Origin: Pavona decussata
Lineage: Eukaryota
Direction of reading: 5' to 3'
NCBI GenBank assembly: GCA_977016875.1
Contig: CDRNST010000035.1
Location: 4,216,001-4,280,000, forward strand
DNA length: 64,000 bases
Positions within the stretch are counted from its first letter, which is position 1. Each line of letters starts with the position of its first letter. The translations under genes and the position numbers were made by a program. A model generated the notes under the pieces. The model saw only the letters and a program-made list of their open reading frames with translations, was not told the DNA's origin and ran no database searches. Shown here piece after piece: positions 40,576-41,745 of this stretch.

Positions 40576-41745
40576 CATGACATTGTTGGGCCATCTCAAA
40601 AAATGTGTCCACCAGGTTGTCACATTGTTTCTTCCAACTGAAATGGTTGGTGTATTCCTTTCTCAGTTCCTCAGCTTGTGAGTGGCGACTTTGTGGGTCC
40701 TTGGATCTGATCTCCTTTATCTTGTCAGCCCAAACTTGTGGATCATCTGACTCCACAACCTGGCTTGCTCCAGTGTGCAGCTTCTTTAAAATGACGCCAA
40801 GGCCACTAAATGAACTGACAAGAACAGGAACATTGGCAGAAATGGCGAGGAGACCACTCATTCCAAAACCTTCAGTTCTTGACGGTTTGATGACCAGGTC
40901 AGCCTCACACAACCACTGACGCCAGTCTGCATGGTTTTTACAAACCCTCACTGTAAGCTGACGGGAATCAATGCCCTCTTTGAGTAAGGCCTGTGTTATG
41001 TCTCTCACACCTGTCTCTGATTCAGAGGGCCTTAAAACAACCATTAACTGATAAGATGATGCGTTCAGCAATTTGATTGCTTGAGCAGCAATGTCGCATC
41101 CCTTGACTTTAAAGTAATATGATGATCCACTGACCAACACATGAAAATTGTCAGCCTCATCATACACTCGACGAACACCATTCAATTCTTCGATAACTCC
41201 TGGTGTAAACTCAATCACATTTTCATGCTTGCTAGTATGCCGTAAATAACGTCTGTAAGCTTGTGCCACCTTAGGGCCAATTGCAATAATGATGTCAGCC
41301 TTTTCACAGAGTGTTACTTGAAGTTGATGATCATCTTTACAATCTTGTGGATGTTCTAAGAATTTATAAAGTTCATCACTGATTGTGTGCACAACCTGAG
41401 CCCACTTGCATTTCTTGAGTTTCTTTATAACTTGTGCTTGTCGACCTAGGCCAGGTCCGTATGAATGTATCAACAGAATGTCAATCTTTAGGTGGTCAGG
41501 TGGGTGACCAAGGAGCTCAGTTGTTGGGTAACCAGAGAGATCCTGATCCGCATCAACAAGTTCAATATTTAAGCTCCTTGCATGGTTTCTCTTTTCCTCT
41601 GAGTGATGGGGCACAAATCCACTGACTTTCAGTCTGGAATCCTTGGCCAGTTCAAGAACTAACAGCGTATTGACAGCATTTTTCCAGTTACCAACATCTG
41701 ATGCTACTGTTATATTTAACTTTCCTTCAGCTGTTGAATTTGAAC
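40576..41745 (-). CDS. G3 exon: GT-B fold, GT4 / Glycos_transf_1-like glycosyltransferase domain
   Basis: tgtcttacag|GT TCA ... TGT CAT G|gtaagc, 1170 nt, phase 1-1. Motifs WAQVVHT, ADIIIAIG, KG.DIAAQA, ADLVIKPSRTEGFGMSGL.AISANVPVLVS, YTNHFSW. Confidence 0.88.

Follow-up and report, generated by a model that had tools for sequence, protein, structure and literature searches.

A death-domain-linked GT4-fold domain of a coral belongs to a clade with a rewritten sugar-nucleotide site

The DNA analyzed here (hereafter, the window) is a stretch of 64,000 nucleotides of the coral Pavona decussata, positions 4,216,001–4,280,000 of contig C35 in the assembly that we label G000. The GC content of the window is approximately 38% and its introns are long; the host assembly, of 602 Mb, carries coral-type immune genes in the hundreds. 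The site at 40576–41745 lies within an open frame of 420 codons on the minus strand, and a second open frame is found on the same strand at 57395–58633. Both encode a domain of the family 4 glycosyltransferases (GT4), and we refer to them as copy 1 and copy 2, respectively. A Pfam search located five death-domain exons in the window, all on the strand of the GT4 copies. As described below, 40576–41745 holds, in one exon, the GT4-fold domain of a coral gene that has three exons and is expressed. The domain belongs to a clade of coral sequences in which elements that GT4 enzymes use to bind the sugar nucleotide are replaced, and we argue that its ordinary enzymatic function is probably gone. The positions of the exons, introns and motifs are collected in Table 1.

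The joint 37694/40576, which connects the GT4 exon of copy 1 to a death-domain exon, was found in contigs from four public runs (X1, X2, X3 and X6), with GT..AG ends and on the minus strand. That these contigs behave as RNA was deduced from the splice pattern, because the intron between 37695 and 40575 is skipped, the exons are evenly covered and most of the intron bins are empty. The contigs represent copy 1 rather than copy 2, as they show zero or one mismatch over 223–474 nucleotides, and the two copies are 4.6% apart. Loose ends of the contigs at 41747 match 45830–45850, a match that is unique in the window, and an ATG and a GTGAGT donor are present there. All of the copy 1 junctions are in phase 1 and preserve the frame, which gives a predicted protein of 557 residues (7 + 1 + 389 + 1 + 159). 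Copy 1 has open frames in its three exons, canonical splice sites and spliced RNA in the four runs, which cover at least two samples, and a genome search found no intronless copy of the gene. An earlier note on this DNA, made from the sequence alone, had proposed that the domain is wired to a death domain, and the splice joint in the RNA contigs bears this out. The predicted product appears to be cytosolic, with a short N-terminus followed by the GT4 domain, a linker and the death domain. A separate observation was made within intron 2 of copy 1, where the depth of the run contigs between 39354 and 40480 is several-fold above that of the exons, with many loose ends and small odd joints. This pile-up points to a repeated element in the intron, or to a transcript of its own there.

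Both GT4 exons match the Pfam family PF20706 ("GT4-conflict", Family 4 glycosyltransferase in conflict systems) over model positions 15–385 of 385, with scores of 184.9 bits for copy 1 and 170.8 bits for copy 2 against a gathering cut-off of 26 bits. Canonical paralogues, by which we mean those that retain the family motifs, score 280–320 bits. The general GT4 C-terminal Pfam models gave weaker matches in both copies. In a survey of control genomes, from E. coli to Sulfolobus, PF20706 exceeded its own gathering cut-off in 14 of 14, and a match above 26 bits can therefore not by itself single out a conflict-system GT4. The copy 1 domain is closer to the coral and bacterial conflict GT4s than to housekeeping GT4s, sharing 37–45% identity with canonical paralogues of the same genome and 13–17% with GT4 enzymes of solved structure. 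The host genome contains at least 61 scored PF20706 exons among 205 candidates, and 106 matches to the query protein.

An AlphaFold2 model of the copy 1 GT4 domain, built on a 75-sequence alignment, has the GT-B fold, with a predicted local distance difference test score (pLDDT) of 90.1 and a predicted template modelling score (pTM) of 0.89. Confidence is lowest at residues 11–30, around the remodelled loop described below. When the model was compared with known structures by VIA-align, the Z score was 31.5 to 6kih and 30.3 to MshA (3c4q), over approximately 350 residues at 3.2–3.4 Å. Foldseek placed MshA first, with a template modelling (TM) score of 0.74, followed by BshA, PglA, WaaG and glycogen synthase, and its best matches are all GT4 or GT5 enzymes. 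By these predictions, the GT-B fold of the motif-poor domain would be intact. The earlier note had described a GT4-fold domain that departs from the family norm, and this description agrees with the PF20706 match, the GT-B model and the state of the three donor-binding elements.

In GT4 enzymes, the first Glu of the EX7E motif contacts the donor sugar, the second Glu forms hydrogen bonds with the 2′ and 3′ hydroxyls of the ribose, and a conserved Arg together with a Lys coordinates the pyrophosphate of the donor (PMC8760489). The EX7E region of both window copies reads EGFGMSGLL, so that the second Glu is replaced by Leu, exactly as the earlier note had read it. HMMER alignments to MshA, the sucrose-phosphate synthase 6kih and WaaG, which covered the C-terminal half of the domain, confirmed this assignment: Leu lies opposite the second Glu (Glu324 of MshA), Ser or Tyr lies opposite the Arg of the G-R...K-G element, and the Lys-Gly and the first Glu are kept. 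The canonical counterpart of the latter element is FGRGDxEDFxLKG, and both window copies have SGSSYYFKVKG; the reported absence of the Arg is thus correct, and the Lys remains. In copy 1, Val directly precedes the kept Lys. The position two residues before this Lys varies in the motif-poor clade (K, E, L, N, Y or M), and at neither of the two positions that precede the Lys is a compensating basic residue conserved.

The third element is the N-terminal Gly-Gly loop. Because the HMMER comparison with solved structures was confined to the C-terminal half, the mapping of this loop rests on the paralogue alignment and on the secondary structure of two AlphaFold models. In the model of a canonical paralogue, the β1-α1 loop has 10 residues and ends in Gly18-Gly19, at the start of helix α1, whereas in the copy 1 model it has four residues and the helix starts at Trp20. 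The earlier note had called the loop absent. There is indeed no Gly-Gly, but the loop is shortened by four residues rather than simply lost, and the Gly-Gly positions of copy 1 read Asn19-Trp20. Most relatives have Gly-Trp at these positions, and Trp20 is 98% conserved in the clade. Copy 2 carries the motif strings of copy 1 at positions 16,860 bases further on, with one exception: the N-terminal string that had been given for both copies is exact for copy 1, but copy 2 reads DVGNWKNTVN, one residue different from DVGNWKNAVN.

The canonical state of these motifs was assessed in 43 distinct copies read from the host genome. The second EX7E Glu is present in all 43, the pattern SEWGSxKGGLSTxNREL in all 42 that have a complete N-terminus, and FGRGDxEDFxLKG in 42 of 43. 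Among canonical database relatives, 117 of 120 keep the second Glu. The canonical motifs are also kept by a bacterial homologue (L062), a TPR-GT4 protein from a Mycobacteriaceae metagenome genome with 37% identity, which was the only full-length relative in a scan of bacterial genomes; four other matches were partial. The family in the database is large, with at least 5,753 clusters returned for a canonical-paralogue query, a search that yielded single-exon open reading frame calls only, versus 352 for the motif-poor query. Three canonical-type loci of the host genome deserve mention in their own right. L047, a member of the canonical set, has Cys in place of the diphosphate-binding Arg. L048 (G000:C91:186383-187531) and L060 (G000:C289:2207985-2209115) are GT4 exons with canonical motifs and one in-frame stop each (TGA and TAG, respectively), and are probably pseudogenes within the large GT4 expansion.

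The motif-poor form is shared by 10 copies in the host genome (the two in the window and eight others) and by all of the 120 best database relatives, down to 49% identity. Glu occurs at the second-Glu position in none of the 10 genomic copies and in none of the 120 relatives, and neither Glu nor Asp is found there in any of these 130 sequences. The replacement is Arg in 87 and Leu in 33 of the 120 database relatives; Ile or Tyr is found in other genomic copies. The clade is further marked by the short β1-α1 loop, (Gly/Asn)-Trp in place of Gly-Gly, the HSYG insertion, and S-G-S with a two-residue deletion in place of G-R-G-D. In a maximum-likelihood tree (IQ-TREE quick search) that sampled 58 motif-poor sequences, all 58 fall on one side of a branch whose support in the Shimodaira–Hasegawa-like approximate likelihood ratio test (SH-aLRT) is 100. 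The stem measures 0.87 substitutions per site, and this clade sits nested among canonical coral paralogues. The motif counts, the bacterial homologue and the tree together show that the losses are real and far beyond chance, and that they are derived changes that arose once.

We compared conservation on the two sides of this branch. In the canonical copies, 130 columns of the alignment reach a conservation of 90% or more; of these, 74 are the same in the clade, six have switched to another conserved residue and 50 are relaxed or deleted. The 74 kept columns include His93, His119, Asp150, Gly-Pro-Lys156-158, Lys214-Gly215, Asp217, Pro-Ser-Arg287-289 and Glu291-Gly-Phe-Gly. Within the clade, Lys214 (itself 98%), Glu291-Gly-Phe-Gly, His93 and His119 are 98–100% conserved, and Gly215 is invariant (100%). 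The switched columns are Gly to Trp20, Arg to Ser207, Glu to Gln142, Met to Lys286, Leu to Val159, and one more. Approximately 36 positions, for example W20 and W274, are newly conserved and specific to the clade. For older pairs within the clade, omega (the ratio of non-synonymous to synonymous rates, dN/dS; Nei–Gojobori method) was 0.39, 0.27 and 0.14, with synonymous sites saturated in the last two, and canonical pairs gave 0.12–0.37. The pattern agrees with change in a burst and constraint over the long term thereafter, and not with decay.

Named members of the clade come from Montipora capricornis, Porites lobata, Orbicella faveolata, Pocillopora damicornis, P. meandrina and Oculina patagonica, which we take to represent both main stony-coral lineages. 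The combination of GT4 and death domain, in a protein of 550–600 amino acids, was found in gene models or transcript contigs from four named species (of Montipora, Porites, Orbicella and Oculina) and two further sources; for Pocillopora, the GT4 part was found. In the host genome, a related death-domain exon lies 1–3 kb downstream on the same strand in four of the 10 copies (copy 1, copy 2, L035 and L037). Nine of the 10 motif-poor copies, and most of the death-domain exons related to that of copy 1, lie between 3.82 and 4.41 Mb of contig C35. This 0.6-Mb stretch is a local tandem array of GT4-Death genes and genes with a death domain only.

One interpretation of these results, which we regard as moderately probable from the residues at the donor site, is that transfer from nucleoside diphosphate (NDP) sugars has been lost or strongly altered in the clade and that the domain has a binding role. 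The changes on the stem of the clade rewrote the nucleotide half of the donor site, through shortening of the loop, the change of Gly-Gly to (Gly/Asn)-Trp, the replacement of Arg by Ser, and that of the second Glu by Arg, Leu, Ile or Tyr. The half that is proximal to the sugar and the phosphate (Lys214-Gly, Pro-Ser-Arg-x-Glu291-Gly-Phe-Gly, His93 and His119) has stayed nearly invariant. Because the residues that bind the sugar nucleotide are rewritten, ordinary enzyme function is probably gone, and we infer that the domain has given up the usual binding or turnover of NDP-sugars. It could then act as a binding module, whose ligand would resemble a sugar or phospho-sugar or whose partner would be a protein, for instance a pathogen factor or one of the canonical GT4 paralogues, and the state of this module would control assembly of the death domain. 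The near invariance of Lys214, Glu291-Gly-Phe-Gly and His93 argues for a cleft that has been remodelled and is still used, over a dead scaffold.

Several points weigh against this interpretation. Retaining GT-B enzymes do not have an obligatory catalytic nucleophile, and for that reason a rebuilt pocket could still carry out transfer from another donor. The predicted inactivity rests on motif logic, and a compensating residue may reach in from elsewhere in the fold. Active WaaG has Gly-Ser where other enzymes have Gly-Arg, and the HMMER alignment shows that it has an Arg directly before its Lys instead. In addition, the weight of either EX7E Glu varies, and one of them is expendable in some GT4 enzymes (PMC8760489). 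The dN/dS of approximately 1 between copy 1 and copy 2 (see below) leaves current constraint on both unsupported, and a related death-domain exon was not found for six of the 10 genomic clade copies at E ≤ 1e-5.

An alternative is that the protein still functions as a glycosyltransferase effector whose donor site is altered, which may use another nucleotide-sugar or a non-nucleotide donor and would be recruited or positioned by its death domain. The 98–100% conservation of Lys214, Glu291-Gly-Phe-Gly, His93 and His119 is what would be expected of a cleft in use, the Arg of Gly-Arg is also missing from WaaG, which is active, one EX7E Glu is dispensable in some GT4 enzymes (PMC8760489), and coral GT4 domains have been predicted to be catalytic effectors (PMC8195603). 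Against these considerations stands the fact that three separate donor contacts were altered together on one branch. The Gly-rich loop is shorter by four residues and bears a bulky, conserved Trp at a Gly position, the second-Glu site is never acidic in 130 sequences and often carries an Arg of opposite charge, and 50 of the 130 family-conserved columns were relaxed or deleted. We therefore consider an active effector somewhat unlikely, although it is the strongest of the alternatives.

Another alternative is that both window copies are decaying duplicates without function, whose odd motifs were inherited from a functional ancestor. The GT4 exons of the two copies share 91% protein and 95.4% DNA identity, and the similarity of their flanks is patchy (downstream, 64 nucleotides at 98% and 225 nucleotides at 92%; upstream, 172 nucleotides at 85%). 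Their dN/dS, calculated from 42.3 non-synonymous and 11.7 synonymous differences, is 1.02; the N-terminal half taken alone gives 2.4, and the C-terminal half 0.53. The value above 1 rests on few changes, and relaxed constraint accounts for it as well as diversifying selection does. When the changes were polarized with the nearest relative in another assembly (P0003, locus L061; 1,068 nucleotides usable), seven non-synonymous changes and one synonymous change were assigned to copy 1, and 14 and five, respectively, to copy 2. The death-domain exon downstream of copy 2 is frameshifted and more divergent, with 42–49% identity to Montipora and Oculina proteins versus 52–57% for that of copy 1, and copy 2 may be a dying gene or may contain an assembly error at this exon. 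The outside relative used for polarization itself looks rearranged. These features speak for decay. The earlier note had drawn on the frame being kept intact in two copies; this carries little weight, and the argument that two intact frames reveal selection fails because dN/dS is close to 1 and the death-domain exon of copy 2 is broken.

Decay of both copies is nevertheless difficult to reconcile with the state of copy 1, which is open in three exons with canonical splice sites and is represented by spliced RNA in four runs. The counts behind the ratio are also small (12 synonymous and 42 non-synonymous differences), and an omega near 1 is often seen among young duplicates in immune gene expansions. 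We consider it very unlikely that neither copy has a function. The two appear to have arisen by recent tandem duplication and to experience little if any purifying selection; copy 2 is probably decaying. The case for a function is carried by the clade, which is deeply conserved, and by copy 1, which is expressed. A separate observation concerns the outside relative (L061:6778-8288), which is the closest to copy 1, at 84% protein identity: it contains a tandem duplication of exon nucleotides 717–1161 and its C-terminus is shifted, and the locus looks rearranged or misassembled.

The possibility that the motif losses reflect an alignment artefact or chance variation in a very diverse family, to which the variable placement of the N-terminal gap (three residues at GGL versus four at SEWG, depending on the alignment) might lend some colour, is ruled out by the counts and the tree, given that every alignment agrees on the lack of Gly-Gly before helix α1, the C-terminal motifs align unambiguously to MshA, 6kih and WaaG, the second Glu is split 0/130 versus approximately 160/163, and the carriers form one clade.

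The family to which the domain belongs has been catalogued by Kaur, Iyer, Burroughs and Aravind (eLife 2021, PMC8195603), who reported more than 500 GT4 paralogues in Acropora digitifera together with relatives in bacterial conflict systems, and who predicted the metazoan GT4 domains to be catalytic effectors. The GT4+DEATH architecture occurs 21 times in their source data, for example as SIG+GT4+DEATH of 524–526 amino acids (PMC8195603). Copy 1 is a member of the same family by hidden Markov model and by tree. The bulk of the coral expansion and the bacterial relatives keep the nucleotide-binding elements, whereas the motif-poor clade has them rewritten. No mention of an inactive or motif-poor GT4 was found in the text or supplements of PMC8195603, nor in full-text literature searches. 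From the catalogue and this negative result, it follows that the GT4 family and the GT4-Death build are known; the remodelled, coral-wide, death-domain-linked clade appears to be undescribed.

Comparison with the solved retaining GT4 enzymes (MshA 3c4q, 6kih Tll1590, BshA, HepE, PglA, WaaG and PimA) places copy 1 within their common GT-B fold of two Rossmann domains; by VIA-align, Z scores to solved GT4 enzymes are 25–31.5, with root mean square deviations of 3.2–4.2 Å over 330–358 residues. The Lys-Gly, the first Glu of EX7E and the PSxxEGFG loop are common to these enzymes and copy 1, which differs from them in lacking the second Glu, the Arg of Gly-Arg and the Gly-Gly loop; WaaG likewise lacks the Arg, but only that. 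GT-B folds that act as non-catalytic partners or scaffolds are known, such as streptococcal GtfB, the partner of GtfA, and the Tps1-like domain at the N-terminus of Tps2 of fungi (5dxf). Such folds lack a competent donor site and are used for binding; 5dxf is one of the Foldseek matches of the copy 1 model. GtfB lies outside the 50 best Foldseek and VIA-align matches, in a general structural search that did not include a direct comparison with GtfB. No specific sequence kinship between copy 1 and partners of the GtfB and Tps2 type is apparent, and none of these partners is known to carry a fused death domain. Pseudoenzyme or "integrated decoy" domains occur in immune receptors, as exemplified by the integrated domains of plant nucleotide-binding leucine-rich repeat (NLR) proteins and by pseudokinases. 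The likeness to copy 1, that of an enzyme-like domain with lost catalysis beside a death-fold or signalling module in a fast-expanding immune family, is purely one of analogy.

A more specific form of the binding interpretation can be envisioned, in which the protein is a pseudo-glycosyltransferase receptor whose rebuilt cleft, with Trp at the phosphate loop and Arg at the ribose Glu, binds a sugar, a phospho-sugar or a pathogen factor, and whose occupancy triggers death-domain assembly and cell death. The pathogen factor would be one whose normal targets are active GT4 immune effectors, of which corals have hundreds. We put this forward tentatively, as it is itself unlikely; if true, corals would possess an animal equivalent of the plant "integrated decoy" that has been conserved from a time before the two main stony-coral lineages separated.

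Corals possess hundreds of GT4 domains in their innate-immune repertoire. The motif-poor clade offers a clean, old and expressed case: the fold and half of the cleft are retained, the contacts to the nucleotide are gone, and the link to a death domain is specific. Because one genome supplies paralogues of both the canonical and the remodelled type, a natural experimental contrast is at hand, and the clade may give a handle on a link between sugar chemistry and cell-death signalling in coral immunity, symbiosis and bleaching. There is also a warning for annotators: to label these coral proteins of 550–600 amino acids functionally as "glycosyltransferase" is probably wrong.

Table 1. Positions in the window of the exons, introns, domains and motifs of copy 1 and copy 2
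Feature	Position	Strand	Details
Copy 1 exon 1, coding part	45828..45849	-	ATG at 45849-45847; MEHTPAV and the first base of a Gly codon
Copy 1 exon 1 donor	GTGAGT starting 45827	-	From sequence
Copy 1 intron 1	41746..45827	-	Phase 1, GT..AG; acceptor AG at 41747-41746
Copy 1 exon 2	40576..41745	-	Entire GT4-conflict (PF20706) domain in a single exon of 1170 nt; ends set by RNA joints
Copy 1 intron 2	37695..40575	-	2881 nt, phase 1, GT..AG; donor CATG/GTAAGC (slash, exon end)
Copy 1 exon 3	37213..37694	-	Linker, death domain and stop codon
Death domain PF00531	37225..37434	-	Pfam 35.2 bits, cut-off 22.6
DVGNWKNAVN, copy 1	41669..41698	-	Remodelled β1-α1 loop, 4 residues shorter than canonical ASEWGSxKGGLSTxN
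HSYG, copy 1	41456..41467	-	His93 kept, then clade-specific 2-residue insertion; canonical GH-G
SGSSYYFKVKG, copy 1	41099..41131	-	Ser207 for the diphosphate-binding Arg, 2-residue deletion; Lys214-Gly215 kept
EGFGMSGLL, copy 1	40847..40873	-	Glu291 (first Glu of EX7E) kept; second is Leu299, facing MshA Glu324
Copy 2 GT4 exon	57436..58605	-	Motif states and splice-site sequences as in copy 1; limits by homology only
Death-domain exon downstream of copy 2	54765..55042	-	Two tblastn segments in different frames; TAA in the match

Elsewhere in the window, the long open frames at 30860–31672 (-), 22068–22736 (+), 32660–33097 (-) and 20916–21320 (-) gave no Pfam match at E ≤ 0.01. A further open frame of 620 codons at 25942–27804 (-), where the local GC content is 52%, encodes Pro/Thr-rich repeats of approximately 17 residues (GSGVPPVAQPPNTTA...), and its sole Pfam match was a sub-threshold one to Extensin_1. 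A repeat that closely resembles it lies in frame, and without an intron, upstream of the GT4 domain in P0003/L061.

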